DNA of 64,000 nucleotides from Oopsacas minuta. Taxonomy: Eukaryota > Animalia > Porifera. A program made the translations under genes and the position numbers. Where the stretch lies: NCBI GenBank assembly GCA_024704765.1, contig JAKMXF010000341.1, positions 1 to 64,000 of the forward strand, written 5' to 3'. Below, piece by piece: positions 1 through 30,700 of the stretch. Each line of letters starts with the position of its first letter. The stretch's first letter is position 1. The notes under the pieces were generated by a model. The model saw nothing but the letters and a program-made list of their open reading frames with translations, was not told the origin of the DNA and ran no database searches.

Positions 1-1292
1 CCCTTCTATTCATTAAACTTAATGGCCCTCCACTTTCTATATGGGATCCTAGCGATTATGCTAGATGTTGGCTAAGAAATCATCGGAGTGCATCAGATAC
101 TCAAATAAGGGGTAGCAATAGTCAGATAGTTGAAGAAAACCCAGTTTGGAAGTATATTTGAATAATATACATAGCATTTAGGCATTTACAAGGTATGTTT
201 CACGCAGTTGTTTTTTATCTGATACAAATATAAACACACCGCTATATATAATAATAATCAGTGGTATTTTGGAGGGAGCACGCAGGTGGGAGGTATGGCG
301 CACCCACTTCATTATTGGGGGCCGTTTTCACCTATGTTTTCTAAGAAAATGCTAAATTTGAAAAGAGAGCGCCCCCCCACTTCTTTTTTTGGCAAAACAC
401 CATTGCCTATAATTTTAACCATTTGTCAAATTAATTGCTTTGTTTGCCAGAATAATAGAATTTTCAGTGCAGTTGCCAAAATAATTGAATTTATTTGCCA
501 AGTTTAATGGTGCATCCAAAGTTATATCATGCTATTACGTATATTGTGTCACACTGTCGTGTACACTCATGTGTATTGCAATCTGGTAGAGTTATAGAAA
601 CAGGATCAAGAACAGAATTTATATCAAACTAAAGAGTCAGATTTACAATAATAATATTCAGTAGTATATGAGCAATGATAAGCAGATTAGTTAGATAGCT
701 TATCTAAGGAAATTAGGGAAATTTTATCAATTTATAACGAGGCAATCAGGAATGTGAATTATAAGTATCCATAGTACACGACTATATAATAAGCCAAAAC
801 CTATCAAATGATGATAAATAGAAATAAATAAATCTAGCTGATGTACACAGGAACAGAGACTAATTACAGAGATCAGCTGATATCTCATCCATATTGCATA
901 AAGAGGAATAGTATATAAAGATTACTTTCTATAACATACAAGCGAATAAATATGTTATTCATAACAGGCACTGATACAGATAGTCTGTGTATGACGTCAT
1001 ATGTGTGTAGCGTATGAATACATTAACCAACTATAATCTCTTACACACTGTATGTACACAATTCCCCCGTGATATTATCTCTGAATGATGTTCTAATAAT
1101 TAGTGACCTTCCTCTTAAATCTTTGATATGAATATATATCCTATAATGAATAATCTAGATACAAAGCTACTACGTAGTGTACAGTATTGATCTCTTATTA
1201 TAAACCTGATTACTATGACAAATAATAAGAGTCTCGCGGGGGTTCACTATAAGTGACCCTGACTGTACTTATAATATCAATTCCTTGAATAG

Positions 1293-4200
1293 ATGGTTAG
1301 AGGCTAAGAGAGGTAAATTTCAGATTTGTGACTGGCAGACCCTAGCCAAGATATGGTATTTAGAGAAAGAGCGGACTTCTGAAGAGATGGATGCGACAAG
1401 TATTTTCAAGAAGGTGAGTATCTCATTATAGCGTGTAATGATCATATGCTACTACTAACAAATGACGTATATCTATACTAGTTATTACTATCAATCTTGT
1501 AAAGTCAGCCAATATAATACTGAATTTCACAGACTAAGTTATGTAACTCCTAAAGTTGGTTACATCTAATATAAAACCACAGATTTACTATACACGAAAC
1601 TTATCTAATAATCGTTAAGAAGAATACAATCACTACGTAATGTATACTTATATTTCATAAATATTTACTCAGCTAACTTCAAATCCTTGGCGGTTGCTTC
1701 ATTAGAGTTGTGAATATAACTTAGTTTTGATGTTGTATATACATGTATGATGTATGGGAATTATTATCAGATAATACTTGCATGATTCTTATTTCTTAGA
1801 TTATTATCTACGAAAATCGCGTCCCTTAAATATCATTCTTTTAGGACGTACACTTAAATAGGAGACGTTGAAACGTTACGTAATCATATAATTAAGCAAA
1901 ATTATAATTAATTTCCAAATTTAGTGTATGCATAGAATTATTTAAGGGTCATGACCCATGGCCAATTTGCAGCTCTACTCTCCTAGCATACGCATGTTTA
2001 TTTTCGAGAAATAAATAATATGTAAAATAAAACAGGGACGTAGGGAAGCAATAAATTTTTGACGCAACAACCGCCGCGCCTGCCGCACCGGCCTTTAAAG
2101 GATTTAAAATTTTTGCACCTTTCAGGAATAAAATCATAACAGCTTGATACATTTATAAGTCATGCAACCTTTGAAGTAATAAACACACGATATTAGATCT
2201 ATTTTCTAAAATACAAATTATTTCCAGGATACAAAATTAATACAGAAGATAAAAAATAGATAGAACCCTGATACCGGCTCCTAAGGCTCTGATAAAACAA
2301 TTTTGCCTCTTGGTCAAAACAGGGGTGTTAACCTACTGTTGTTAGTCCAGCTGTACTTAGATTGAATAATCGCTTCACGAATAAACACGATAATCCATTA
2401 TATGACATAATATTTAATATTAATTAATTAATTATGGCTGTTTATAAACATAAAAATATTAAATTGATCTAACTATATAATAATTATGTAATAGTAAATA
2501 CGGTCATGTTCAGCTGAAGTATACCTCGAGGTGTGAAGCGCCAATATCAACACGAAACAACGAGCCAATATAGCTCTATATTACTCATTTCTTAATACTT
2601 AAATATCAGATAATGAAATCATAGACATTATGAAATGCGTTGAATCATTTCAGTCATCACGAAATATGAATTAATCGAATATTTCTTGTATACGTGAATT
2701 CGTCAAATTTGCGTCATATTTTACTTCTAAATACATTATATGCATGTCCATAGTGCGAAATATTAGGAGTCGTTACAAGTGTAGTGTGGCTTTACGCTTC
2801 AAATTAGAAACTAATTATAGAACGGATATTAATAAACATGTCTTGGAAGAGGTACAACGAGTGCTACCTCTTGTCCTGGAGTATCCCAACTTACTTACAA
2901 GGACCCTAGGAGTCCAGGACAAATTTCTACTCAATCCAAAAATAATACCAGGGCAGTGCCTGGCGGTAGGGAATAACAGACCTTAGACTCCTTAAGTGGA
3001 TTAAAGGGCTTAATCTAGCTAGTCATATCATAAACTGTTATTCATATTATTCATGTCTAGAGCCCTAGGATACACTTTTCCCTGGACTCCTCTAATGACT
3101 TCGGTAGCTATATACGCTCTTCCTTGCCTTTACAAATCCTGCACCCAGCCTGCTAGCCCCAGTATTTTCGTCTCTGAGTTATATATTAGCTGAAATTAGT
3201 TTATCTATAGGTTATGTGTAAATACCATTCGGAAACTTGTACTCACCGATTCTGAGCGCAAACAACTATGTGGCAACCTAAGGGGTCCATCTGTATCTTT
3301 AGAGTTTAGATATTATCTTAGTTCATTCTTTAGAATTAATAAAGGAAATAGAATTAAACTGGATTAATTCTATCGGATGTGATGAATCCGATTTTCACAC
3401 TTTTGAATCAATCATTGTTGTTGTTGTTGCATGGTTGCTGTGGGAATGGAATTTATATTCAGAAAAATTGATATGTTGAGGGGTCTACAGCGCGAAAATG
3501 TTATGAAACGCTATTTCCTGATTCTCAGAGAGGTAAAAAAAGCACATTCCATACGGCAATTTGTGTTTATGTGAATAGAAAGTAAGCAAATAAATTATCT
3601 ACTCAACTTGACTATGGATGGTATAAACTTTTTATAGGGTGTCTTGGACATTTTTACGCTTCGAACAATTATATAGCTTACTAATACATTCACACACCGT
3701 CACTTATTGAAATTTTTCGGGAAATTACGTACGTTTTCTTTATTAGTCCAGTTTAGTAACATAGATGCCAACCTAGCGTCTCAATAATTCATGAAACACC
3801 GTCTAACAATCCGTGTAATATCTATGAGAACACTGAAAATCCGTTCGGTAAAAGTGATAGGAAGATGGCGGATACCCACATTTCTTTGTTGAATCAAGTC
3901 ATTATGATGCACTTACTGCTTTAAGTTGTTTGGGAATTTCCCATGGATTAGCGCAATCCATGGAATTGCTTGTTTACGATATCATATTTGGAACTCAGCA
4001 TATTCGATTATCCCAGAATAGCCATTGAAAGTATGAATCTACTACGAATTTGAAATTCGCTTTGTTTATGTACCTAAAAGTAAACAAATAATTCACAATA
4101 GGTTGTTTACAATACCATATTTGGGCTCAGCATACTCGATCACCTCAGTATTGTCGTTGAAACTATGATTCTACAACAATATCGAAATTTGTTTACTTTA

Positions 4201-6052
4201 TATTCATAAAAACAACAATAAATTTACATATGATTAATCCCAAAGTGTGAAAATCGGATTCAACATGTTCGATATATTTAGTTTTATTGATAAACACGAT
4301 AAATACAGAGTTATGCGACAACTTCAAAATTGCATACTGTAAATCCTTTCAGATAAACAAATATGCTAAGCGAACATCTAAAATATGTAAGTGTAGCTTA
4401 TGTCGTTAAAATTTATGTAATACAGAGAAATTCCTGAAATTTCTTTCAAGCTTTACGAAATGTCTGAACAGCTCTTAATTATTACATAGTAAAATTCCAA
4501 TTTCCATAGCAACGAAATTAAAAATCAGGAATTTACAAATACAAAAATAACTAGTGTTGCTGTTTAGATGTAAATTTTGAGCACCCTACATATCCATATT
4601 TTGTGATCTCCCAAAACCTTAGAAATATTTGAATACAGAATTCAAAACTACAATTGGAACTAAACTAATTCAAATGTATCATTGAATTGCTTTACTTGTA
4701 TGCATTGTGTATTTTGCATCAGGTAGTATTTATGGAATTGTAAACCTACAAATATGTCGTCTTTTAAGAAATGTATCATCTCCCTAGTTAGTTGCCAAAC
4801 CTCCGTTATCGCATTACTCGATACATATTACTTATACAACGAGGACTTCGTCATATATTTCATGGTAATGTTGTATTGTGCAATCACGTGGCTATGAGGA
4901 GGGAAGAGGATACGATAGGTAATTACTTCGCGTTCGTTCGATCCGGAGGGTAAAGCCACTGAGATTTCGAGTGGCAGGGCCGAATGCTGGTTTGACAAAT
5001 CTTGCTGTCCAAGACATCGTGATCACAAATTTGGATATCATCGCACCAAGAATAGGTTCTAAAAATGTTATTGGTTCCTAGTTCGCACTAGCGTCACGTG
5101 TTCATATAATATTCGACGTTGCACTGTATCCTTTATAATATGTCAAAAATAGACTATAATTTTACAGAAATAAATGTAAATATAGTAACAGAATAATAAA
5201 CTCACAATGCTTCCATCATCATTAGGGTTTATCTAAAGCTTTTCCAAATCTCCAAGAAGTAAAAAACATGAGTATCAAGGAAGGAACCCTCTATAAGACA
5301 AGGGTGTTTGAAGCACCAAAAGAATTATGTGATGGTTAGTTTTTGCTGATTGGTATAATTCCATTCATTATCTTGTAAATATCAACAAATATCTCTTTAG
5401 AAGTGTACAAATTTGTGAAGAATCCACGTACACCAACAATTCCCTTCGTGAGTTCTTTCAAATACGATTATTATGTATTCACTGGCTAAATATTTGTATT
5501 TATAGAATATTCATTCATTGAATGTATATCTGCCTATGTCCTAAATACACCCTTCCAATTCTAATTCCAGTTCAGCAATCAGTTCAATTATGAATTGTTA
5601 TGTGGAATATTGTAATTGATATCAAAATGTAACACTATTGGCTAGCGAATCATGATGTTAACAGCATTAGAACTTTGAAATAGTCGACGAAGTGTATATA
5701 ATTAGAACCTAGCACAGCTATCGAAATTCGAATTCCTTTGATTAGTTCAAGAAATTAGTGTGATGAATTGACAACACATAGAGAAAAGTAATTACGCGCT
5801 ATGAATAGCTAGGACAATAAAGCTTTAATTCTGTATACATAGCTATTAATAGAACCAATTCTCAGTGTAAATTTACTATATTACACCATACTGCAGTATA
5901 CATTTCCTGATAAATAAATATAAGAATTTATTTTTGATAATTAGAGAGGTTTACACGACTTGTATCTGTTATTATGTATATCTCCGTAGGAATATGCTGT
6001 AGTGTATCCTGCAAATGCAACTCCTACTCTTTTAGAACCTTACCCACAGGTA

Positions 6053-6087
<35 letters not shown>

Positions 6088-9000
6088 GAGAATCTATTTT
6101 TAGATATTTTAATTCTTAAATATTATGGAAATGCCCACAAGACTGAAATTACGTAACTTTTACTATTTGGGAACAGTCAATTCTTAGCTCAAGCCTCACA
6201 TTTTCAAATTGTACCTATTTTTAGTCAATACGTCTATAATTGCCTCCTTACTCTTTCATAACATGTTAGGCACTGGTTCGTGTCCAGTAATGCATCCACA
6301 GCTAGTAATTGCCGAAATATAATGAATATCTGATGGAGGATAAGAATTCATTTACTTTTGAGGGTCCTAAGGGAAATTAGTTTAATTGTCCAGGGACGAG
6401 TTCCTGGGCTACTAGCTCATAGACCCCAACCTATTCTTCCACCGTTGTTACGGTATATTGCAAAATATAGGCGAGTATTGAATAATTCATGATTATTGTT
6501 TCTATGAAGATATGACACTAACATAGCATTGGTAAATTTACATCATTTCCCAGAATAATTCAAATTTTCGTATTAAGTTATGGCTACAAATGCAAGGGGC
6601 TTGTCAAAGGTAGACCTTATGGGAGGCGACCACTATATAAAGTGGCCTCAACCAGCATTTGGCTGGTCACTTGCGGTGTATGCCAGCTGAGTGTAGTTTG
6701 TTATTACTTGGTTACTGTTGTTATAGGCTATGTAGCATATAATACCTGCAGCATATTCCAGATAATCCCGCTGAGTCACTCCATATTCTGAACATGGATA
6801 ATCAACAGTTGCATATACTTGTCCTTATGTAAGACAATGTATTTACAAATGCTTGCTGTATAAACCACAAGTGATTCAGTCAGGGTTGCCGTGGGAATGA
6901 ATTCTTGATACCTATCCCCATATACATATACATATATTGATGGGATGGGAATTCCTATTCCCACTGATAACCTGGCTTCTATCCATTGTAAAACCCCCGC
7001 ACTTGAGATTGGGCGCATTTTCTAATCAGCTACAAACTGTTTTTATTAAATCCAAAATAGCGTTTATTCTTATTGTTAATTCGGCAATGTTGTCAGATGA
7101 TGTGTCAAGTTAATGCAACACACTAGAAAGTTGATGACATGTTCATAGGCCCTCAACACCGGAGCAGGGGGCTTGAGCTGCCAAAATTCCGGTGTGAAAG
7201 GGGTATTAGAGGGAACACCGACCCAAGCTTTAAAGAATCATTTTGGTCACCATTTCTTTCTTAAGTTTGTATTAAATGTATAGCTGAGCTACTTATATTA
7301 GCTCTCTTTAAAAACTTAAAACTACGCAGTGTTGATAATTCACACAATAATCAACAAATATTCCAAATTTGTAACATATTGTAACGCAACTTAGCACTAC
7401 CAATGCCTGTAGACCAGCATTTGGCTAATCTCTATTGTATTTATTCGTATACTGTAACTGTATCTCAAATATTGTGTATAGGTCAATCTTACAAGTTGTA
7501 ATCAGCTTGCTACGTCCCTGTAACGTATTAGAGATATTTATTCAATTATACTGATTCAAACATATAATTTTCTACAGAATATTAGCGTTAATTATTATTA
7601 ATTAACTTTACTTTTATTAATTCTCGCTAATACAGCGTATCAAAAATGGTAGGTAGCATCCCCAAATGTCTAGAAGATTAGTCCTCATTATATGTATTTG
7701 CATTGTTACGTATTTATCCTATATGTAACTGGAATCTGGAATTCGTTATTGGTTTATTAATAGATTTAATCTAGCATTTACATTGGAGAAATTTGTAAAT
7801 TCAAATCAGAGAAATATATTTAAACTGAATAATAAGCATTCATTGGATTTATATAATTTTCTAGGAAATTATTAATTCCTCTTAATTCTCCTTTTAGAAT
7901 AATCAGTTTGCTCCTACTATGTTCCGTAAGTTAGCATCTATTTTATTCGCATAATTCACTATACAGTATTTCTTGCTATTAATAGTTTTAAGTAATTCTT
8001 AATTATTGCAATTTATAGTCTTAGTTTAGCAAAGTAGTTCAAATTCCATTTTTATAATTCAATGTTAGTAGTATTCTAATTTGAAATATTAATATTATTC
8101 ATTTTCCTCATCTTTATAGCAATCGGACCAAATAATGTAAGTTAAATATTTTTGTATATTTTTTTATATATCACTGTATTTTTATGTTATTCACACGGCC
8201 ATCATTCTATTACTTGTTATCTTACAAGTATTTCTGATTACATATTTAATAAACAATTATATAGTTTTACGTATTATTATCCATAAGCTGAGGTTAGATA
8301 GCTCCATTATCAGATGATTACAGTATATTATATATTCGGTGTATATTAATATTTCATGATTTAGAATCAGGTGTTTGATGTAAGCTTCCCTCATATTGCT
8401 CCAAAACGAGGTATTTTGTATATTTCATTTACATTACAATAATGCAATTTTATTCTAAAGTACATAATAAATAAAACATCCCATCCAATCTTGTTAAATA
8501 ATATAATCTCAGTAAAATAACAACAAAAATGTATAAATCTATTAGTTATTATCAGGGAAAATGTTTGTATAAATTTTCATGACACACAAAGCTATTTTCC
8601 AATTTATATGCTGTAACGAAACTCGTTTTGATATCGATATTATAGAACAGGCATTCCAGCCACAAGTTCACCCTACTTACCCTCACAACATCCCCATCAA
8701 CCAACAGCAACAGATTCCTTTCAGAATCTTTCCCAGACCAGTTCAACAGGTGTATCCTAGTCAGATAATAAATCAACAGACTACCGATGTAGCTGTAAGT
8801 ATGACTATGTTCTACAGAATTTTACAAAAACTGAGTAATTGTAACCCAAAATTATGTAAATTTAATCAAAAGTTAAGTCCATTTATGTTAGTTTAAGTTT
8901 GCTAAATTTATATTTGAAATATTACAAGCAATTTTGAATTTAAATATATAAATATTAAGAAATCTGATAGAAAAAATTTAACAAAATTAACAAATGTATT

Positions 9001-11450
9001 TTTATCAAAATATATGAGTAATAGACATTTTGTAATCTTAGGAATTATATGGTAAAGCCCACCACAACACGATGCTACAAAGTTCGTAAGAGTTGCATGC
9101 AATAATGCTGCAAGAAACTTTGTTGCATGGAGAGTAACACATTCTATTTTCCTACAACTATGTTACATGAAAATTTAATTTTATGCAACACCTTGTATGT
9201 AGCTTGTTGCATGTAACAAAGATACATCGTGTATGGTTTGCTTAATAAGAGTTTGTTCCCAGATTATCAATTGCCATCAAACTCCTTTGAATGCTTTGTT
9301 GTTAGACTAATCTTATTAATTAAACACACCCTTTTATTCACGTACAATGGATATATGTCTATTCTTTTGCGATTTAATTCATCATAACAAGGAATTTTTT
9401 TCAAAAATAACTATTACAATCACTATCTTTACCTTTATATATCTTTTATACTTCTAGCAACCCGAGTATACTCTCCATTCTATATCTCAGCGTAAGTTTT
9501 GCTCTAATTCTCTCTTCAAAACAATGAATTGTTATGTAATCATCTGGTTAATTATTCTTGTACTTTATATTATAGAGATTCTGAATGGTAATATGGTTCC
9601 TGGCAATGCAGTATATGCTCTACGTGATCCGGTAATTATTATGCTTCATTTCTAATTCATCACTAATTGAACTCTTTGAATAACTAGAATATATCATGCT
9701 GTAAAATGTAATGAGAAATAATCTTTGAACATGGTTACTCATTTTTGCTTGACACATAGTAATAGTAAAATTTGTCAACTGTCAAAAGCGAGTATACATC
9801 ACGATCGAATTACTTGGAATGGCATATGTACGTGGTTTCAAAACAGCTAGAGACCTTGTGTAACCTACTGTAAATTCTCATGACACCATCTCTGTTGAGT
9901 CGACTAGGGACGAGTTGACTTAGTACGAGTTAGTATTTGGGACGAGTTGACTGGCAATCCTCTAGATGCACATCCTAATCATTACCAGGTGTTGATATTA
10001 CATACATCCTATAGGATCAAGTTGTACCTGAGAACTCCTTCAGTCCGGAATCTACTTCATTCTATTCGCAGGTAGAGACCGAGCCTAATACCCAGCAATA
10101 TGCTCCCCATGGTCAGTGTGGAATTGAGGACTGTGTAGACATTCCCTGCAAGCCATCCCCAGGATCAGATCACCACCCCATGGTACCGTCTCCCCATGTA
10201 CACCAGTTTGAGGAGAATGTCCCTAGCAATATGTACAGTTCTTCGTCTTCTTACACAGAGAGAAGTGAGTTGATATTTGTAGTACAGTTAAACCTCCGTT
10301 AGTGAACACCTCTACACAATGAACACTAGTCTTCGGTCCCGAAATGATCCCAATCATTAAATGTGAACCTCTGCTTAGTGAACACCTCGATATAGTGAAC
10401 TAAAATTTCAGTCCCGAGGCGTTCACTATAGACCTAATATCACGCGATCAATAATAATATTTGATTTATTCAAACCACAAAATACGTAAATATATTTGCG
10501 ATTTCCAATTATGACAAATTAATTAAGTACCCCCCCCCCCCTGACCCCTGAGAGAGAAATGTCATTTCTTTTTGTTATATTACCAAATTTTACTGAAATT
10601 TATAGGAAACTAGAATTATATTCGTTAATTAGTTAGTGAATTCCAAACCAGTAAAGTTATAAATTCATTGCAGTTCCGGATTTGTAATTTTCTTATAATG
10701 AATTTTCATTTGTAAAAAATAGTTTACAACATTTGGTGATTTTTGATATTCAATCTTGCAATTTTGAATTTTTCCATTAATTATCTAATATTAAAATTCA
10801 TAGATATTGGACAAGATTTTACTTGTATAGAAGAAGAATAGAACAATTTCCCTAAATCTATTATAATCATAATTCGTCTTCTCTTTGGTTCGATCTATTT
10901 ACATATACGTACTCGTATATATTGTATCAAAATAAATGTATTTACTGTCTACTCACTATTTATTGGATACTACAACACTATAGGTCCTATCGGACATTTG
11001 GAGAACCCATTGATTGAACAGAAAGATGTGGAACATACATACCAACAAGTGAGACCAAGTTATTTAACTATATGTACCTATACGTATACGAATTTCTATT
11101 ATACAATATACACTACATTCTATTTGCACGAAAACTGTAAACTCAAAGTAACAATGTGAATCATTCATTATGTTAATGAGAGTTCCAGGGTATATTCTTG
11201 GTGTTCATATCGAGAATTATTCAGTATATTTCTCTGATCGATAAGATAGTAGAAATTAGCTAGAAATTAAAATGGTGCATAATTTTGGTTAATGTCGTTC
11301 ATGTTTGGATTACAAATATTCAATTATATACAACTTATACCCGTCAGCTGACACAACAGCTGTTTTTTTTGCATTATCAAGATTTAATATAACATGAACC
11401 ATTCCTTCTACAGGTACAAGAACAGTCTCTCATAATGTCAGAGTACTTTG
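1293..11450 (+). CDS. Multi-exon gene, both ends unresolved: divergent ETS/IRF-like winged-helix transcription factor with a Pro/Gln/Ser-rich C-terminal region
   Basis: Phase-compatible AG/GT exons at 1293-1413, 5226-5334, 5401-5447, 5990-6049, 7907-7925, 8646-8794, 9458-9491, 9576-9631, 10015-10264, 10984-11048 and 11414-11450 join with no stop. Peptide: WLEAKRGKFQICDWQTLAKIWYLEKERTSEEMDATSIFKK|GLSKAFPNLQEVKNMSIKEGTLYKTRVFEAPKELCD|EVYKFVKNPRTPTIPF|EYAVVYPANATPTLLEPYPQ|FAPTMF|QQAFQPQVHPTYPHNIPINQQQQ... The first exon matches the spacing of the ELF-type ETS core (W-x5-G-x-F-x-L-x-D-x3-V[AS]-x2-W-x3-K). The exon chain is well supported; the family call is less certain. Confidence 0.6.
3970..4350 (-). 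mobile_element. Internal fragment of a non-autonomous Helitron family, with a diverged ~133-bp tandem unit
   Basis: Shares the block AATAAATTTACATATGATTAATCC..AAAGTGTGAAAATCGGATTCA..GATAAACACGATAAATACA..GTTATGCGACAA.TTCAAAATTGCATAC with copies near 30440, 57850 and (reverse) 59400. TTGTTTAC.ATA.CATATTTGG recurs at 3970 and 4103. Confidence 0.65.
6053..6086 (+). repeat. (TTA)n microsatellite in an intron
   Basis: About 11 tandem TTA units just after the 5990-6049 exon. It produces the poly-Leu in the spurious ORF 5974-6156. Confidence 0.9.
9090..9230. repeat. Dispersed TGCAAC/GTTGCA-rich repeat (copies also at ~21180-21290 and ~53090-53200)
   Basis: GTTGCATGCAA.AATG.TGCAAGAAACTT.GTTGCAT.GA...TTCTATTTTC.T.CAA...TGTTAC.TGAAAA is shared between ~9091 and ~21183; a related motif occurs at ~53170. 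Confidence 0.55.
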
Positions 11451-13640
11451 GTGAGCTACGAATGATTGCTATACTTTATATAATATGTGTCGATCACCTA
11501 ATATATGATCACGTTCATGATCATTTTTCCGATCACTTTTCTGAAATTATAAACACATCCTATAGGGAGATTCTCTATTACTTGCATCCGTCCTCCCCGC
11601 GGCCATGCGAAATCTACCGATTACTATGAAATTAATACATACATTTTGATATCATTTTGGGTCTATATATATATTCGCGAATTTTCAAATTCTGTCTGCA
11701 TAAAACGCTCGAAATAGGATTGAAAATCTTTCTGGAAAAAATGATCTTCCATATTCGATCACTGTTTATAAAATGATCAGTAATCATCCTCTGATTGTCA
11801 AAAATAGATCACGGTACTAATGTTGTACACGTGACTGGTAATATATCTATAGTAATATCCAAATTTCTCTTTCCATTATCTTTTCCTCTAATTTTGTAAC
11901 ACCCGAAGCCTTGCTTAATTTAATCTACATATATTTCTAGTTATTCAGTGTGCAGAAAATATTTCCGTCTGTGTTTCCATTTCCTCATATTGATAACTAC
12001 GGCCTCACATGATTTATAGTTGCGATAGCTAGATTCCTTCCTTCTTGTAATATCCCTTACCTGAAGGATTGTTAGAATTGCACAAGTAGCCTCTTTTACT
12101 TCAAAAGCTACCTATGACCTATAATATAAACTATTCTCAATTAGATATTACATTGAAACTAATAGTTTATTATACTTCAATTATCCAGATGATTTATAAT
12201 ACATACAATTGTACTCAATATACGCACATCAACACTGTATTTTACGTGTATATGCTATATGCTATATGCTATATGATATATGATATAGTTCTGTTTCTAA
12301 CCTTTCGTATTGCAGAATTAACCATAATATTACTTCCAAATTTGGATCAATTAGTTGTTATTTTATCTCTACAGTTGTGATTATATCATTTATGCATACA
12401 GTGGAACCTGCAGCAGATGACTTTGAATAACCGTATGTTCATCCGTATTTCTGATTTTACAGGTGTCAGATTATGCAAGTTCCATTGTACGAACATAATT
12501 TCTTTAATTCCTTTATTTATACGATTCGATTGATCTGTTTGAATGCAGGACTTGTTTCTTAGAATTTTACCTACTATCCGTTTTAATTTTCACCCAATTT
12601 GTTTTCAATATTATGGATTTGTATCTCTATAGGATGTTAAGTATAATAATGCTCCTAATTAGAGTCCCGGCGCTTCTTATTTTTGTCGGAATTTTTGGTC
12701 GTATTTTTTCGATTTTTGATAATGCAAAAATGTTATGACTTTCATTAATCCATTCACTTGGGAAACGCCTAAAAGGTTACTCTTTGTTATTTGTACTGAT
12801 GTGTGTATTTTCTAAATCTATCAAATTATCGGTTTATTGCTAACTCTATAAAACGCATCCAATTCGACACTGGAACTGTACTATCTGTACTAACTGTACT
12901 ATTTGTACTATTGATTATCTTAATAGATAATAATGGTTAATTTGTCTTTGCTGAGGGTGCATTTATAAATGAAACCTATAGTAGTATTTAGAACTATACA
13001 CATCACAATAAATCCATATATAATATAGTTACAGTTTCAATTAAGTAATAGGATGATTTTAACAAAAATAAAGTCATAACAACATAACATTTCCTTATAT
13101 ATTTGATTTATCATATGGTAATTGCATGTGAAGAATGTGTATGTTTTGTGTTTAATGAAATTCTGCACAAATATGGGAAGAATATACGAAATATTTGAGC
13201 AAATATTGTCCGTTTTTCTGTGTTTGTGCATTCTTGAAAGTTGAATTGATTAAGGTCTATACTTCAAATGGTAGCCCCCTCCCCTAAATACCGCTTCCTT
13301 GGATTACTCGCCCCCTAGAGGAGGGCCATATATTCTAAACATCTTCTCCAAAGTCCTGCCAGAATCAATACAGATAAACATCTGAGATACGGTATTATTG
13401 GGAGTATTAGCTTCATACCCAATATGTAAAGTGGCTGGGCTCATTAACTCCTCTCTCCATAGGACTAACATTGTTTCGAACAATGTTTTACTAACAAATG
13501 AAATCAATCAGACGGATTGGGGATACTATATCCGGGGAGATCTGCCGCTTTTGGAGGTTTGCCTGTAATCGCGCCAATAGATAGAAAAATATGACCAACA
13601 TATACGCCTATGAACTACCCCGTACGTAAATATATATATA

Positions 13641-16672: not shown

Positions 16673-19089
16673 ATGGAACAAATAGTTAAACAAAATACTG
16701 AGAATAACCAAAGGTCACAATTGGATAAATCCCATCGTCAAAACAAGAATTCTATATCTCATATTTTCTTTAATTCAATACAACCTTCTAATCCTTTAGA
16801 AGTACGTGTTACTCCAGCTCACAGCCCCATTCAGGTAATACATTTACTAATATTTTTAAGACTTTATTATTATATATAATTTGAATTATATGCATATTTA
16901 TAGGGTGGAGGAGACCTGTGTCTCGTGTTTTCACAACAAGATCATCCAGTCCCCCAAGGAGAGAAGTTCCTGCATTTTGACTCAATAATAGCTCCACATC
17001 TAGTAGCAATAAACCAGGACATGGGTTATGCTCTCTTCACACAAATACCTGCTCACCCAAGAAGTGAGACTCTCCAAATATACGTCATGCTAGCAGAGAC
17101 CCGCGCTAAGATAGCTTCAGCTGAATTCACATACACAGATTCCAGTTATAGTCCTTACACGATTGAGGTATTGAAGGGATTGACACAGAATCTAATCACT
17201 AACGAGCACTACAAGAGCATTACTGCAGATTTCTCTAGCAATCAGTTCCATAACACTCAACAACAGACACCTAACCAGTTCTACAATCATTCAGGTGAGT
17301 TAGTCAATTCAATATTACTCTATAGAACATTCTAGAATACTCGTTTATATTATTCTATTTATATCCAGGTTATAATCCAATATATAAGATGTTAGTATTA
17401 GCTGCAGGTCTCGGTCTAGAACCTCTGTTATACGTACTGCTACAGCCCCGCACTCATCATAACCTCCTGTTAATGCCATCGCCTGCTGGCCTCCTGCCTG
17501 AGGACTATGCTCATAGGTTCGGACATCACAGAATATCTGTCTGTCTCGCTCTAGTTAGGAAACAGTAAGTTAGATACATGATAATCTATGTGTTATTTCC
17601 GTTGAATTAATATCAATTCACATCGTATAATTAGTATAAATTATTTCTCTAATTGCAAATTAATTAATGAACAAAGTAAAGTTCATTGAATGTTAGTTAC
17701 GTAATCAGCCTCTTAGCTCTGTTTCATTATACATGTATGGCACAAGTTCAAATAACAACGAATATGTTTAGTATTAGAGTCATTTGCAGATCTTACAGGT
17801 GTTCTAAGATATTGAAACTGTTTAAGTGCACTTCTAGTTCTATGTCTTATTGGAAGTATAGCTCTAAATTAGCATATTTATAGACATCACTGAAACTAAC
17901 CATTACTGATTATGTATTATAATTTGCTATTCTTAGATATGAACATACAAGTGGTGTACAAAATGACGAAACAGAAGATGGTGAAGTGGAGACTACAAAG
18001 CGTGATAATAAATCTAGTTTCTATCCAAAGGGAGATCCTCTGGAGCTCATTAATAGAGGTGGAACAACCCCAAAAGGTAAATAACAATAATAAACTACTT
18101 AACACTTCGGTTTAATATTACCTTTCCAACCATTAATTTATACTTATTTTTTTCACAGAGACTACACAAGCTATAATGGCATATCTCACTAAGCTAATGA
18201 CTCCTACTCAGGTTCAGCTTCAGCCCATACCCTCTCCACCTGCAATCGTATCTACATCTTCTCCAGCAGACAAGAAGACTATAACCAAGGCATGCAGTGA
18301 GGATGTTTTGACTAAGAAATCTTCTGTAGGTAAACAGGAACCTGAAAATGAACCCAGTCCTAAACCTTATGACCGCGGACATTCAACACCAAAACGTAAG
18401 CCTTTGCCAGAATGATTAGCATTTGTAGATAGTCTAATATATTTTATCTCTATCAATTTCTATTTATAGTTGGGAGCTCAAGCAGCAAATCTTCATCTTC
18501 CAATGTGTTAGGAGATTCAGGGTACGAACCTAGCTTCGAGTCTTTCAGAGAATCCCGAGACGGTGACGTAATAACTGGTGAAATAAATCTAATCTCAGGA
18601 CTGAAGTACACTAGGAAATGTGACCTAGGAAGTATCAATTCGATAAACCATCATAAAGTTGATAGAATGCTAGAAAAGGATGCAATTGACCTACTCAATC
18701 AAGAGCTGAAGGGTCTCCGTATGGAAGGAAGACCCATGGTACTCACTGCAAGAGGAGAGTTCGAAGCCACTCTCAAACTAGAGCCCCTACAATCCACACA
18801 AGATTTGCAGAAAGTGTGAGTGTCCCTCATCTTGGGACTGAATCTCTTAACAATTATTATTCTGACTGAATCGTGTGTATGCAGTTTGTATATTTCAATA
18901 ATAATTAATCAAATAAATGAGATTTTTATCTAATTCGCTCATTTCAGCTTTGATTCTCGTGAAGTGAAGATTACCAAATCTGACGAATCAAGTTTCGCTA
19001 TCGTCGGTGGGGACCAAACTGGAATATTCATTCACTCTACTAAGAACACCACTCAGAATCAACGGGCTCCTGGGGGCCAAATACTAGCT
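16673..19089 (+). CDS. Multi-exon gene, 3' end unresolved: DBB/IPT-like domain + ankyrin-like repeats + Ser/Pro-rich linker + PDZ domain(s)
   Basis: Phase-compatible exons 16673-16834 (start uncertain), 16904-17294, 17369-17564, 17937-18076, 18159-18395, 18470-18815, 18948-19089. VRVTPAHSPIQGGGDLCLVF...LFTQIPAHPRSETLQIYV...IASAEFTYTD resembles the AKAP13/ARHGEF28/BCAP N-terminal domain. LAAGLGLEPLLYVLLQ...AGLLPEDYAHRFGHHRI is ankyrin-like. SINHHKVDRMLEKDAIDLLNQ and SREVKITKSDESSFAIVGGDQTGIFIH...GGQILA are PDZ-like. Confidence 0.7.
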
Positions 19090-21475
19090 GTGAGTGTAAC
19101 TCCCCCAGGCGACTACTGGTAATTAGATGGTAGTGTATGCGAGAATTGAAGGGGTTTAGTTAATTTAGCTAATACTCGCCAACCTGACTGTAGAAAATAT
19201 CCAGACAGAAAAACGCTAATTTATTGGAACATTGCGTGAAGTAGCATATTAGCACTTAATTAATTAAACTGGGAGGAAGCAGATTTGGAAAGTTTCGTTG
19301 GGATGTCGCGCTAAAGTGTGGACAGTTGGTAAGTATGCTAGCAATAAATTAGTGGGGTAAGTAATACTCGGATTATAAGGAGTTGGTTGAATGTATATGT
19401 TAATGTATTTTCCATTACCTTATACTGATACTATTCCACGTACGAAATATCAATTGGATTAGTCATTATTGGCATGGCAGATGATAAGCGATGCCAGTTT
19501 CAGTTGTGTTCATATTGGAGATGAGGTACAATGTTTTGTAGCCAAGTTTGCAGCAACAAAATCCCTGAATATTATCCGCCAGTATAATCTCGGTGTAACA
19601 ATATTAATTTACCATGGAGTAATAGGGTAATATTACATATCATTTGCAATCAAACCTGATTTATAGCACCGCCATATAACCGTTACTTACCACAGCTCAC
19701 AGTCAGATTTCTCAGTATAATACCCTGTGTTATATAATTTCCACTGTGTTGACTATTCTGAGATTCAATCAATTCTTAAATCTCAGATATTAGCTGAGAA
19801 ATAAATTCCAGATAAATTTGAGTTAGTTATACGAATTTGTTATTGTTTTATAATTATAGTGGATGCATATTTCGAGGTAACAATTATGCGATTCTATCCT
19901 AATCAATATTTGAATAATTCATAATTCTCTACAATGTTCAATGAATTATTCAGCTTAGAGTATAGTTGGAGAATATAATTTTGCTTTAGTATACAAGGGT
20001 GTGAACAGAATAATATTGCATTTAGTACTGTTGAATTAGATCAAATTGTTAGGTTAAAATTCGTGAGACCTTATGGAAAGTCAATATTGAATTGAATTAC
20101 ATTTGGTTGCAAAGGAAATGACATTACAATGCACATATTCCATATGACATCCTCAAACTACTTAATTTCTTGTCTGACCACCTTCTAGAGTAACAGGGAA
20201 TATGTTGGTGATCTCTTACTGGTAAACCATGGAAAATTCTAAAGTTGTATTTGATTAATCTGTTGTTTGTATAATATACAGTACATCCTCGCAAATCCGA
20301 ACAGCGCTGTTCCAATTGCAAAATAATTCGTTCGGATTAGCGATATGGATAGAAATAATACTATAGGATTTAGGGACATAATTTTTGAAAGTTGTACAAA
20401 CAATGAAAAGGTTGCCGACATATTTAATATAGTAATATGAATTTGTCTACAGTAGAATTGGATACAATTAGTTATTTTTGAATATTTCCAAAGGTTGTAT
20501 AACCTTATGGATCAGTTGAGATTAGCGAGAATTGGGATTAACCAGGTTTGGATTAGCGAAGGTCTACTGTACCGGCATATCAACATGTCGTTAATGCAAT
20601 GATAACGCTTATAAGAATAGCATTTGAGAGTAGCAAAAAATAATTTTTTTTGTCTTTTAGATATACATACATGAGTATATGAATACCGTGTCCAAACGAC
20701 GGTTCTTATAAGAGATATTCACTGCCTCAGGACAGGTTCTTATATGCGGCAGTAATTCAAGGGAGTAGAATACAAATGATTGGGTAAATAGAGCTAGAGT
20801 CCTTGTAACCGGTGCTTTAGTAAAGGCATTTACAGTTATAATCAATGTATTACCCATGTGTGTACAGCAATTACACGCTGTCTACGTAACACACGGCTTA
20901 TCAATAGCTTGACAAACTTGTTGACAAACAGTACTAAGAAATATAGAGTCAACAGCCGTTAACTCGAACCTCAGGGGAAGTTAAATGGTTCCCAATCTGG
21001 GGTCCATGGAACCCTTTGGTCGTCAACGGACAACAGCAGGGCTCACAGGATCCAAACATTTGTACTGCAGATTTGCAGTATGACAGTCCTTTCATTTCGT
21101 AGAAAACCAACGGTCTACCTAAAGCCTACCATGCAGGATGCAACATTGTTGCATTTGTTTATGGAATTTTGAGGGAATTATTTTGCATGCAAAATGTTGC
21201 AAGAAACTTGTTGCATTGAAAAAAGGAACTTTTCTATTTTCTTGCAATAATGTTACGTGAAAAGTAAATTTTTCATACAACATTTGTATTGTACATATAA
21301 CTAGATTTTACACTCTAACACTCTATATTTTGCAATGATAGCAATCATTTGAATGCACTCAAATTCTCCCATAGACCGGACCTAATCCGGACCAAAAAAT
21401 AGTTTCATCCGCCGTTCTGGAACGGACAGGAACATTCTATCAGTGCAGTATATGTACATTATATATGATATTTAA

Positions 21476-27745: not shown

Positions 27746-30700
27746 ATGGGTAACCTACCCACTACTATCCTCCCTTCTCTCATTCTACCTGTAGAGCATT
27801 ATGTATCTGAGCTCTCAGAGGTAGATAGACCGCTCAAGAATTTGGGCTCCACCCGCTTCTTCAAAGTAGTGCGAGGTAGACACACAGAGGGCCCTGTTGT
27901 CGTGAAGGTGTTAGTCAAGCATGATCCCAACCTAGTGCTGAAGCAGCATCAAGATCAGTTGTCTTTTATTCTGGAACAGCTGGGCTCAGTCCCTAACATC
28001 CTCCCATTCTCTATCTGGAGAGACTCGGACAGAGCTGCCTTCCTGATACGACCATTTGTCCGCTACAGTCTAGCTGAAAGGATGTTCTCTCTCCCCAGTT
28101 TGGAGCCTCTAGAGAAGAAGTGGATAGTGTACCAGCTACTCACGGCACTGTCCAGTTGTCACCAGTTAGGGGTTAGTTATTTAAATGATCTAACAAGTAG
28201 CTCCTAATCTCTTATACAGGTACACCTCCGAGATACGGTATCCTCGAGGGTAACCGCTTGTAAGAATGTTCGTAGAATGTATTATTTATAATCTTAGGCG
28301 TCGTAAACCATCCGGGTGGCCCAGTAGCACACTCGGAGTTTGAATTGTGGAAAATTCTTCGCGAAAACATCCAAGCAAGTATGGCCACTAATCTAGAGTA
28401 AATAGTCTTCAAATATAGCCAGGATACATCAAAATAGCATAGAACGACAAATTTTCCGCCATGAATTTCTGATAGCGCTAATAACGAATTCTGTTTTTCA
28501 AAATCTAGATATTAGTCATATGCTGAAGAAACGAATATTCGTTTCCTTCGTTTTTATGACAAAGTATTTAACACAGCTGTATCAACTAATTTTGAGTTGG
28601 CAAAAATCCGAAACAGAAATGTGTTATAGAAGATAAATTATATTTTAATTAGTTATGAGAGAAGGTCCAATGTATTGAATACTTAGTAGGTTAGCTCTCA
28701 ATGATTTAGGGAAACAGGGCCTGTTTTGGTCACCGCCGCTATTCAATTAACTGCTAGGATAAAATATTTTCGGCTAACCGAAGAGTGTCATCACCAATAT
28801 TTTCAGTGTTCCAAAGGATTTGAGAAGTACGAATTTATATATAACATGAATTCTGCTTGCTCGGTATTTATGAGATGTGACATTTTATGTCCGAAATCGG
28901 TTAACCAACCACAGCCCTGTGCGAAGCTAAATTTTCAAATTGAGTGGTAAAATATTACGGAGAAATTGCAAACGTAACAATTCGAAAATTATCCATGGTG
29001 CAATGACATAGTAATAGTCAGTTTTCAACAATAAATCTTCGTATTGAATTTGAAGAGATCTACAGGTACATATTTAGTTGGACTATATTTTTCAAAAATT
29101 GGATAAAAGGTTACAAATATAGTGGAACCTGATAATCCGACACCTCTATAATCCGACAGTGTTTATAGTACGAATGAGCTTCCGACTATCACCATCTCAG
29201 GTTCCACTGTTTGGATATGTGATGATTTCACCCATGAAAATCACTGTCCCCTATATTTAATGAAAAACAATATTTTCAATTGCAAGTGAGCAAATAAATA
29301 CTTTCTTTACCCCAAATAACGAACAAAGCATCTTTGAAATCCTCACAAGAACTATTCAACCAATTTTGATATATTTTATTTCTTATACGTATGTTTGTAT
29401 CTTATATAATCAATTAATGATATTGCATATAGTGATAATTTGGACGAAACTTTGTGTCCCTGACATTCTCACTTATCACAAGATCTAATATCTACCAGCA
29501 TATCTACCAGCTATACTGTAGACACATATCGTTGGGCATAAGTATTTTGTGTTTTAGGATGGTATATTGATAATATCATATTTCCCTGATTCTTTTCGCG
29601 GGCATTTTTCGTATGAATTTTTGTGATTGCTATGCCCCCAATATATCTACTCAAAGGAAAGAAATACGAGGAAAGGCATTTGAATTTGTATTGTCGGAAG
29701 CCATTTCGGAGAAGAAACATTCTCGGATTATACAGGTGTCGGTTTATGCAGGTTCCACTGTAATTTCTTCTTTATACAACTTGATTTTCTGATATAATCC
29801 GCTTAGCCAGTAGAAATTTCGTTGAACACGTGATATTATTCCTGCTATATTATACAACTTGTATCTATGTGTACCATATATTGTGACGCATAAAAATATG
29901 TATATTAGCTATCTTATTTACTAATGCCTAGATTAATTTAGTATATAACTTGTATGTAGATTTGTCATGGAGACATTAAAGCTGAGAATGTGTTACTGAC
30001 AGGCTGGAATTGGGTACAGCTAACTGACTTTGCTAGTTTCAAACCTACTTGTTTGCCTCCTGATAACCCAGCCACTTTTTCCTTCTTCTTTGATACTTCT
30101 AGACGTTCCTACTGCTATATAGCTCCTGAAAGGTTCACAGACTCCAAAGAGGTAATTGATTAAAGTGATAAGTACATGCTTACTGAGTTAGTGTATGATG
30201 TATGGTGAATTTATTCATATGTATTTATTTCCATATATAATATTTAATCACGTAAGTATTTTGATAGCTGAATTCAATAGAAATGTCTTCCCAGTCCCCA
30301 CTGGATCCACATATGAGAAATATGAAAATGCGAAATTCTGGTTCAGCGTACTGTGTTCCCCCGTGTAGCCGTTTGGAGCAAGCATGTATTTATATTTTGA
30401 GATGTGGCTAATTTGTTTACTGTATATTCATAAAAACCACAATAAATTTACATATGATTAATCCAAAAGTGTGAAATTCGGATTCAGCATGTTCGATATA
30501 TTTAGTGAAGTTTTATTGAATTCTATTTACTTCCTTGATAAACACGATAAATACATAGTTATGCGACAATTTCAAAATTGCATACCTTAAATCCTTTCCT
30601 TGACAACAGACAATAAACAATAATTGAGATTTAATAATATAGATTCAAAAACTTTAATTTACGTATAGTGACGCCTGTTTCCAATCCAATATCTATTACT

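Follow-up and report, generated by a model that had tools for sequence, protein, structure and literature searches.

The window, that is, the whole 64,000-nucleotide stretch of DNA analysed here, covers the first 64 kb of contig JAKMXF010000341.1 from the glass sponge Oopsacas minuta, in an assembly of 61.46 Mb and 365 contigs. The genome has been described as a hybrid Illumina/PacBio assembly of 61 Mb in 365 scaffolds with gene prediction guided by RNA sequencing (RNA-seq), and RNA-seq data exist from the same study (PMC10280926). Close to the start of the window lies the gene whose product is deposited at NCBI as 'hypothetical protein LOD99_8717, partial [Oopsacas minuta]' (P0007). A tblastn search of P0007 against the window gave a block-by-block match with direct joins of exons 2 to 4, followed by about nine further blocks reaching 11,629. 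The segments 1293-1413, 5226-5334 and 5401-5447 are exons 2-4 of LOD99_8717. We searched these exons singly rather than as a joined model, and P0007 and the Vazella protein P0002 served as stand-ins for the whole domain. The best explanation of the locus as a whole, which we hold with good confidence, is that these directly spliced exons encode a domain of a sponge family, a divergent winged helix of the ETS type. The features are as follows.

647..775, plus strand: remnant of the first coding exon of the ancestral gene, with start codon, tryptophan-rich helix 0 and helix 1; located by an N-terminal profile, tblastn and DNA alignment.
1293..1413, plus strand: exon 2, which covers strands 1 and 2, helix 2 and the beginning of helix 3 (WLEAKRGKF...DATSIFKK); its first base completes a split codon, and the NCBI protein of LOD99_8717 starts here.
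1414..5225, plus strand: intron of 3,812 nucleotides (nt), GT..AG, enlarged by repeats, with its junction in run X4.
4792..4864, plus strand: candidate alternative exon with splice-like signals, unsupported (X4 depth 104, no conservation, 0.1 bits against the ETS profile).
5226..5334, plus strand: exon 3 (rest of helix 3, linker, wing of strands 3 and 4, start of helix 4; GLSKAFPNLQEVK...ELCD plus G), from the X4 junction and tblastn.
5401..5447, plus strand: exon 4 (C-terminal helix 4; (E)VYKFVKNPRTPTIPF), from tblastn and X4 loose ends.
5990..11629, plus strand: remaining annotated LOD99_8717 exons, a glutamine/proline-rich region, from tblastn of P0007.
16904..19119, plus strand: downstream conserved exons encoding beta-rich, helical repeat-like and PDZ-like parts, from co-linearity with the Oscarella protein P0071.

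Positions 1294-1413 translate to the 40-residue peptide WLEAK...IFKK, and from 5226 on the translation reads GLSKAFPNLQEVK...ELCD. The flanking splice signals are canonical (AG 1291-1292, GT 1414-1415, AG 5224-5225) and the phases are compatible. A first-pass annotation made from the letters alone had proposed these translations; they were reproduced, and the same peptides occur in three other glass-sponge genomes. Its boundaries at 1293-1413, 5226 and 5447 stand, while the interval from 5226 to 5447 had to be divided: exon 3 ends at 5334 (donor GT 5335-5336), two bases before plain read-through, and exon 4 occupies 5401-5447 behind an acceptor AG at 5399-5400. A glutamate codon is split between exons 3 and 4 (G in the former, AA in the latter). 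Used as queries against the O. minuta genome, exons 2 and 3 returned their own locus alone and no paralogue.

The joining of these exons was followed in four public runs of one study, none recorded as RNA, aligned to window positions 1-6000. Three of them have a flat, DNA-like depth profile and the fourth, X4, behaves like RNA. Depth in X4 reaches 4997 in the bin with exon 2, 6157 in the exon 3 bin and 2201 in the exon 4 bin, against 106, 104 and 23 in the introns and 106-266 beside exon 2. The direct splice from 1413 to 5226, which the first-pass annotation had read from the sequence, is present in X4 as a joint that becomes GT..AG after a 2-base shift (depth 2386), and was not found in the three DNA-like runs. 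X4 also has loose ends at 5400 and 5448 that contain sequence from the end of exon 3 and from the beginning of the exon that follows exon 4 (5990), which proves the joins 5334>5401 and 5447>5990.

A second path had also been put forward for this intron, in which alternative splicing through 4792-4864 and an acceptor at 5239 would yield an isoform with an R-x-x-R helix and thereby switch the DNA-reading helix. The signals for it do exist (AG 4790-4791, GT 4865-4866, AG 5237-5238) and the path keeps the frame, with 73 nt gained and 13 lost. However, X4 depth over the bin that holds 4792-4864 (4601-5000) is 104, equal to the intron background, where the exons stand at about 5000-6000, and among the X4 joints listed (the 15 strongest of 34) 1413>5226 is the only one of the region and none belongs to the alternative path. 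Neither is the segment conserved: against the orthologous introns of three hexactinellid relatives, which are 440, 753 and 2,513 nt long and all GT..AG, every match had an E-value of 0.14 or worse. The piece scores 0.1 bits against the ETS profile, and using it would delete G-L-S-K and add 24 unrelated residues within the nearly invariant family motif K-G-L-[SP]-[KR]-A-F-P, which would destroy the motif. We consider a splicing switch of the reading helix extremely improbable, and this part of the first-pass annotation is not supported. Nor did a local ETS hidden Markov model (HMM), run over all plus-strand pieces of 1-9000, find a hidden helix-3 exon in the intron. In the Vazella pourtalesii transcript P0002 (EukProt) these residues are joined without an insert, and the direct join recurs in the three other hexactinellid genomes and in Oscarella. 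Exons 2-4 are best read as spliced constitutively and directly, though rare forms may exist.

To place the encoded domain, exon 2 alone was searched against 1.84 billion representatives, which returned the Vazella protein, more distant relatives (50-55% identical) and a single ordinary ETS protein. Word searches, first with these relatives and afterwards with an alignment of them, extended the set to 66 proteins or exon-sized open reading frames (ORFs); they cover proteins between 0.55 and 1.75 times as long as the query. Two sources are named, the hexactinellid Vazella and the homoscleromorph Oscarella pearsei. One further member lies on a 30.7-kb metagenome contig whose BioSample belongs to a study of the demosponge Mycale hentscheli (PMC7157528), and the others come from unlabelled marine ENA, JGI and Logan assemblies, some on megabase contigs. 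No named non-sponge animal protein was among the matches, which is uninformative under the same length restriction. The domain, of about 100 residues, defines an unnamed and strongly conserved sponge family found in Hexactinellida, Homoscleromorpha and a demosponge-host metagenome. It has no Pfam model and is labelled 'hypothetical' at NCBI, and our literature searches found no paper describing it, so that the family seems to be undescribed.

Conservation within the glass sponges is pronounced. Three other hexactinellid genomes carry the same four exons and encode the peptides exon for exon. Between O. minuta and these three species, 17-24% of the nucleotides of exons 2 and 3 differ, with 1-5 residue changes, a non-synonymous divergence (dN) of 0.03-0.09 and saturated synonymous divergence (dS); in exon 3, 20-25 of 108 nt are changed and 1-3 of 36 residues. 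Few residue changes, low dN and saturated synonymous sites point to strong purifying selection on the domain, O. minuta included. The peptides encoded by these exons are conserved far beyond chance. Across the family, the consensus starts with a tryptophan-rich stretch followed by R-K-R-G-K, A-Q-F-I, W-[IL]-D, G-K-F-E-L, W and I-A-x-x-W-Y, and continues with D-A-x-x-M-L-R-K-G-L-P-R-A-F-P-x-L-x-E-V-K, K-[ED]-G-T-x-Y and R-V-F, in which the helix-3/wing motif is nearly invariant.

In its first half, this domain shows kinship with ETS. The sole Pfam match is Ets, at 16.6 bits and E 0.01 for exon 2 (profile positions 21-50). Among whole family members, 13 of 14 match Ets at 14.8-23 bits, with E between 1e-4 and 0.036; the match is always confined to profile positions 2-50, which run from helix 1 to the turn after helix 2. 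All these scores lie under the PF00178 gathering cut-off of 26.9 bits, and the C-terminal halves alone match nothing in Pfam. When the family profile was compared with all PDB sequences, 35 of the 35 matches were ETS proteins (SpiD, SPDEF, PU.1, ELK1 and others; best E 0.0045), with no IRF among them. Likewise, hhalign against the six ETS domains of O. minuta together with one further ETS protein (P0004) gave a probability of 84% and E 7e-6 over 43 columns from helix 1 to helix 2. ETS homology is detectable throughout this segment of the family (L-W-Q-F-L-L, I-x-W, E-F-K-L and V-A-x-x-W-G-x-x-K); in O. minuta itself, helix 1 is without an intact coding exon. Among language-model clusters, the nearest is a Spi-C-like ETS (0.87) and the first IRF appears at rank 25 (0.79). 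The ETS-like core with ETS spacing of the first-pass annotation is thus borne out by the Ets match of exon 2, by the fold described below and by its spacing.

The recognition helix is where the family departs from ETS. The ETS pattern R-x-x-R-Y is absent: O. minuta reads F-K-K-G-L-S-K-A-F and most members L-R-K-G-L-P-R-A-F. As the first-pass annotation had noticed, both ETS arginines are missing from helix 3 of O. minuta, where K and S-K stand against the R-K-G-L-P-R of most members. A divergent subfamily, whose helix 3 carries K-L-M-R-A-L (L-M-R-A-L-S-R-A-F) and so resembles the ETS motif K-L-S-R-A-L (L-S-R-A-L-R-Y-Y-Y), bridges to ETS; by this bridge, the first ETS arginine corresponds to the family R (K in O. 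minuta). The position of the second is taken by P or S, followed by R or K.

Compared with ETS domains of the SPI/PU.1 and ELF types (PF00178), the sponge domain is alike in helix 1, strands 1 and 2, helix 2 and the short spacing between helices 2 and 3. It differs in having about 7-11 extra residues between helix 3 and the hairpin, a tryptophan-rich helix 0 and a C-terminal helix 4, and a helix 3 without R-x-x-R-Y; moreover, one species has it at the head of a PDZ/guanylate-kinase protein, with no PNT domain as partner. Our best reading makes it an offshoot of ETS that has diverged very far. Scans of the O. minuta genome with PF00178 and PF00605 returned six ordinary ETS and two IRF genes and did not recover the present locus. 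The Pfam threshold misses this family, which leaves sponge counts of ETS-type domains incomplete. As a separate observation from these scans, three of the six ETS domains of the genome form a divergent group of their own (69-73 bits; helix 1 Y-L-L-L-F-T, not L-W-Q-F-L-L), located at C330:49156-53734 and C44:578177-578407, with two of them in tandem 4 kb apart.

Structure prediction was carried out with AlphaFold2 on the complete Vazella domain and a 39-row family alignment, and gave a confident model (predicted local distance difference test, pLDDT, 92.6; predicted template-modelling score, pTM, 0.86). The model contains helix 0 (9-22), helix 1 (27-38), two strands, helix 2 (57-67) and helix 3 (74-88), followed by a linker, a hairpin (100-112) and helix 4 (115-126). 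In this predicted structure, the elements of the winged helix come in ETS order with ETS spacing, and the fold is also of the IRF type. Foldseek ranked IRF4 and IRF2 first (template-modelling score 0.50), then PU.1, ETV6 and HSF2, none better than E 0.02; the HSF DNA-binding domain, which is among these matches, has a related winged-helix topology. In an exhaustive comparison with 48,161 PDB representatives, the top 15 consisted of ETS (scores 8.3-7.1) and IRF or viral IRF (7.3-6.5) only, with the next fold at 5.3 and HSF at 4.7. A shape search of the ESM atlas gave the same ETS and IRF pair. The predicted fold is thus specifically of the ETS/IRF kind; ETS has a slight lead by fit and coverage, and IRF has one by identity. 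The comparison with profiles and predicted structures suggested by the first-pass annotation therefore has a two-part answer, in which the first half of the sequence scores as ETS and the fold fits ETS and IRF about equally.

A further claim concerned the second half of the domain, whose helix 3 and wing had been said to resemble those of IRF. A profile of the C-terminal half, compared with the PDB, has IRF-2 as its second match and its best winged-helix one, at E 0.31 and 13.8 bits. The alignment covers the family stretch F-P-x-L-E-E-V-K-x-x-S-V-K-E-G at the equivalent place of IRF-2. The likeness to the IRF wing is reproducible, yet statistically not significant. Searches for the Pfam IRF domain at E up to 10 gave no match on whole proteins or on C-terminal halves, with the reservation that HMMER filters drop most matches above E of about 0.1, and hhalign against the sponge's own IRF domain gave 2.9%. 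This helix-3/wing part is locally similar to IRF-2 and matches no ETS profile. A flavivirus capsid protein (5ow2_A) heads the PDB matches of the same C-terminal profile, with E 0.016 across 17 residues; N-R-A-I-N-M-L-K-R-G-L-P-R-V-F-P-L of the capsid aligns there with D-A-x-x-M-L-R-K-G-L-P-R-A-F-P of the family (1393-1413 plus 5226-5250); this likeness is probably due to chance.

From these features, one could picture the family as a true evolutionary intermediate between ETS and IRF, or as a relative of IRF, with its IRF-like linker and wing inherited and not convergent. The structural part of the claim stands, in that the fold fits both about equally; its ancestral sense was not borne out. 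Against descent speak the missing Pfam IRF match, C-terminal halves included, and the low hhalign value against the sponge's own IRF. The IRF of O. minuta is less similar to the family than vertebrate IRF-1/2, which show the strongest likeness, and PU.1-type ETS domains likewise have an E-V-K strand just after helix 3. Compared with IRF (PF00605), the family has three invariant core tryptophans (44, 57 and 64 of P0002), so that no more than three of the five IRF tryptophans can be paired with one of the family (mapped by eye), and helices 2 and 3 are about six residues apart, an ETS-like spacing in which the long IRF loop is missing. We consider an inherited intermediate unlikely. As the sequence evidence lies nearer ETS, 'intermediate' serves as a description and not as a statement of ancestry. 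The domain is not an IRF, not an ETS member in the sense of Pfam and not a demonstrated intermediate; it constitutes a new divergent branch of the ETS kind with IRF-like traits.

To our knowledge, ETS and IRF factors are both animal inventions, and we know of no documented link between them. A broader proposal would make the family a side branch from the separation of ETS and IRF and, at the same time, a nucleic-acid-binding head on a scaffold of the membrane-associated guanylate-kinase type. We give this combined proposal little credence; if it were true, the mixed features of the family would record how the helix 3 and wing of IRF arose from an ETS-like ancestor.

With the divergent ETS-type domain as the preferred reading, its charge bears on its likely function. 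The domain has a net charge of +3 to +9 and a pI of 8.9-9.9, like the true ETS domains of O. minuta. Basic residues are conserved ahead of helix 1, in the turn that links helices 2 and 3, along helix 3 and within the wing. Since this basicity is ETS-like and the residues stand at ETS DNA-contact places, nucleic-acid binding is probable. As far as sequence can indicate, the domain would then be a putative nucleic-acid-binding head with a specificity other than GGAA, a proposal that we regard as evenly balanced. In the family, helix 3 is rebuilt as [ML]-L-R-K-G-L-P-R-A-F-P (I-F-K-K-G-L-S-K-A-F-P in O. minuta) and followed by a family-specific linker and wing locally like those of IRF-1/2, and helix 3 together with the wing would contact the nucleic acid. 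The domain would form the N-terminus of a long protein, which in its Oscarella form has coiled-coil, PDZ and guanylate-kinase-like domains, while short isoforms would consist of little beyond the domain itself. As a family at the edge of ETS, it offers a test protein for the origin of new DNA specificities, or of roles other than DNA binding, within this fold.

The long form is known from Oscarella, where one transcript cluster comprises forms of 192 and 1,423 residues (the latter P0071) with a common N-terminus. P0071 matches PDZ at 27.7 bits and Guanylate_kin at 25.2 bits in Pfam, both at or above their cut-offs, and by eye a long coiled coil precedes these domains. Residues 395-595 of P0071 are co-linear with window exons at 16,904-17,565 on the same strand, at 21-30% identity, and in another hexactinellid the downstream exons start 1.7 kb after the LOD99_8717-like exons in the same order and on the same strand. 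From gene order and this level of identity, we read 16904-19119 as the same gene; these exons (the 'hidden gene' at 16,673-19,089) are probably the continuation of LOD99_8717. Pfam found nothing on the exons of 16904-19119 or on Oscarella residues 380-620, where DBB, IPT and ankyrin were not confirmed. By eye, the piece 18934-19119 looks PDZ-like.

This architecture supports another reading, in which the domain has lost DNA binding and serves protein interaction or regulation instead, heading a cytoplasmic scaffold that has coiled-coil, PDZ and guanylate-kinase parts. The PDZ and Guanylate_kin matches of the long Oscarella form agree with it, as do the loss of the ETS arginine pair and the Gly-Leu-Pro within helix 3 of most members. 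On the other side, the domain is as basic as real ETS domains, the basic residues listed above have been kept, and Oscarella and Vazella both have short isoforms made of the domain only. We see it as a possible reading and the main rival to nucleic-acid binding, though the less likely of the two. We know of no ETS or IRF protein with a nucleic-acid-binding head on a guanylate-kinase-type scaffold. If the PDZ/guanylate-kinase fusion is true, a transcription-factor fold would be joined here to a scaffold for junctions or signalling, which is an unusual combination.

The 5' end of the gene has a different history in O. minuta. Its three relatives encode the start codon, helix 0 and helix 1 in their first coding exon. 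Of the 4,659 ORF pieces of the window, the N-terminal profile matches 647-775 best (E 0.043), in agreement with tblastn, and this remnant is still open only at 695-753 (AYLRKLGKFYQFITRQSG). Alignment of the DNA with the three relatives showed several lesions: TGG>TGA, TGG>TAG, a 2-nt gap, GGA>TGA at 755-757 and a 5-nt insertion. Identity of the remnant to the relatives is 41-56%, compared with 74-82% among the relatives themselves and about 76-83% for exons 2-4. The ancestral first exon, with the start codon, helix 0 and helix 1, has thus decayed in O. minuta; all four runs agree with the assembly here and none shows an indel, so that an assembly error is not the cause. Searches with the Vazella peptide and the family profile found no intact first exon elsewhere in the assembly, although this search is a weak one that initially missed the remnant itself. 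Rescue by a new in-frame donor at 754 was considered and is unlikely, as the whole exon has drifted to the low identity just given and shows no exon-level RNA depth.

Such decay raises the question of whether the O. minuta gene is a dying pseudogene with exons 2-4 as leftovers. The several stops and indels in the ancestral first exon, the failure to find an intact copy of it and the partial NCBI model would fit this picture. However, exons 2-4 are as constrained in O. minuta as among the other three species, and in the RNA-like run they are plentiful and precisely spliced. Because exon 2 starts inside a codon, there must be a coding exon ahead of it; in X4, low-level transcription reaches at least back to position 420, and the contig begins inside a repeat. 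We judge a pseudogene very unlikely and retain the reading of a constrained, expressed gene, in which an upstream exon, possibly beyond the contig-start repeat, must supply the N-terminus. LOD99_8717 is mis-bounded in the annotation: its 5' end is missing, the ancestral first exon is lost and the gene probably extends to 16.9-19.1 kb. Between exon 4 and these downstream exons, tblastn of P0007 placed glutamine/proline-rich blocks near 5990-6049, 7898-7924, 8365-8409, 8645-8797, 9458-9490, 9596-9631, 10015-10266, 10983-11062 and 11411-11629. The last of these is probably read-through, and so is the 3' end at 11,629.

Repeats lie at the contig start and enlarge the long intron. The contig starts inside a repeat (1-600) that includes the tail of an ORF at 3-113 on the plus strand and has at least 40 copies in the genome. 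The segment 3-113 was considered as a second ETS-like fragment and rejected as the tail of this repeat. An intact ORF of the repeat, 336 residues long, lies at L019:649-1659; it has no match in Pfam, and by eye the repeat tail resembles the C-terminal end of a hAT-type transposase. Within the long intron, an element of about 380 base pairs at 3970-4350, with an inverted fragment at 3342-3415, is present in very high copy number. The intron repeat has at least 40 copies at 79-86% identity, and its summed contig depth reaches 350,000 in the public runs.

Further along the window, an ORF at 27746-28207 on the plus strand, starting M-G-N-L-P-T, resembles the myristoylated N-terminus and the kinase start of a protein of the Vps15/PIK3R4 type and probably marks the next gene downstream.

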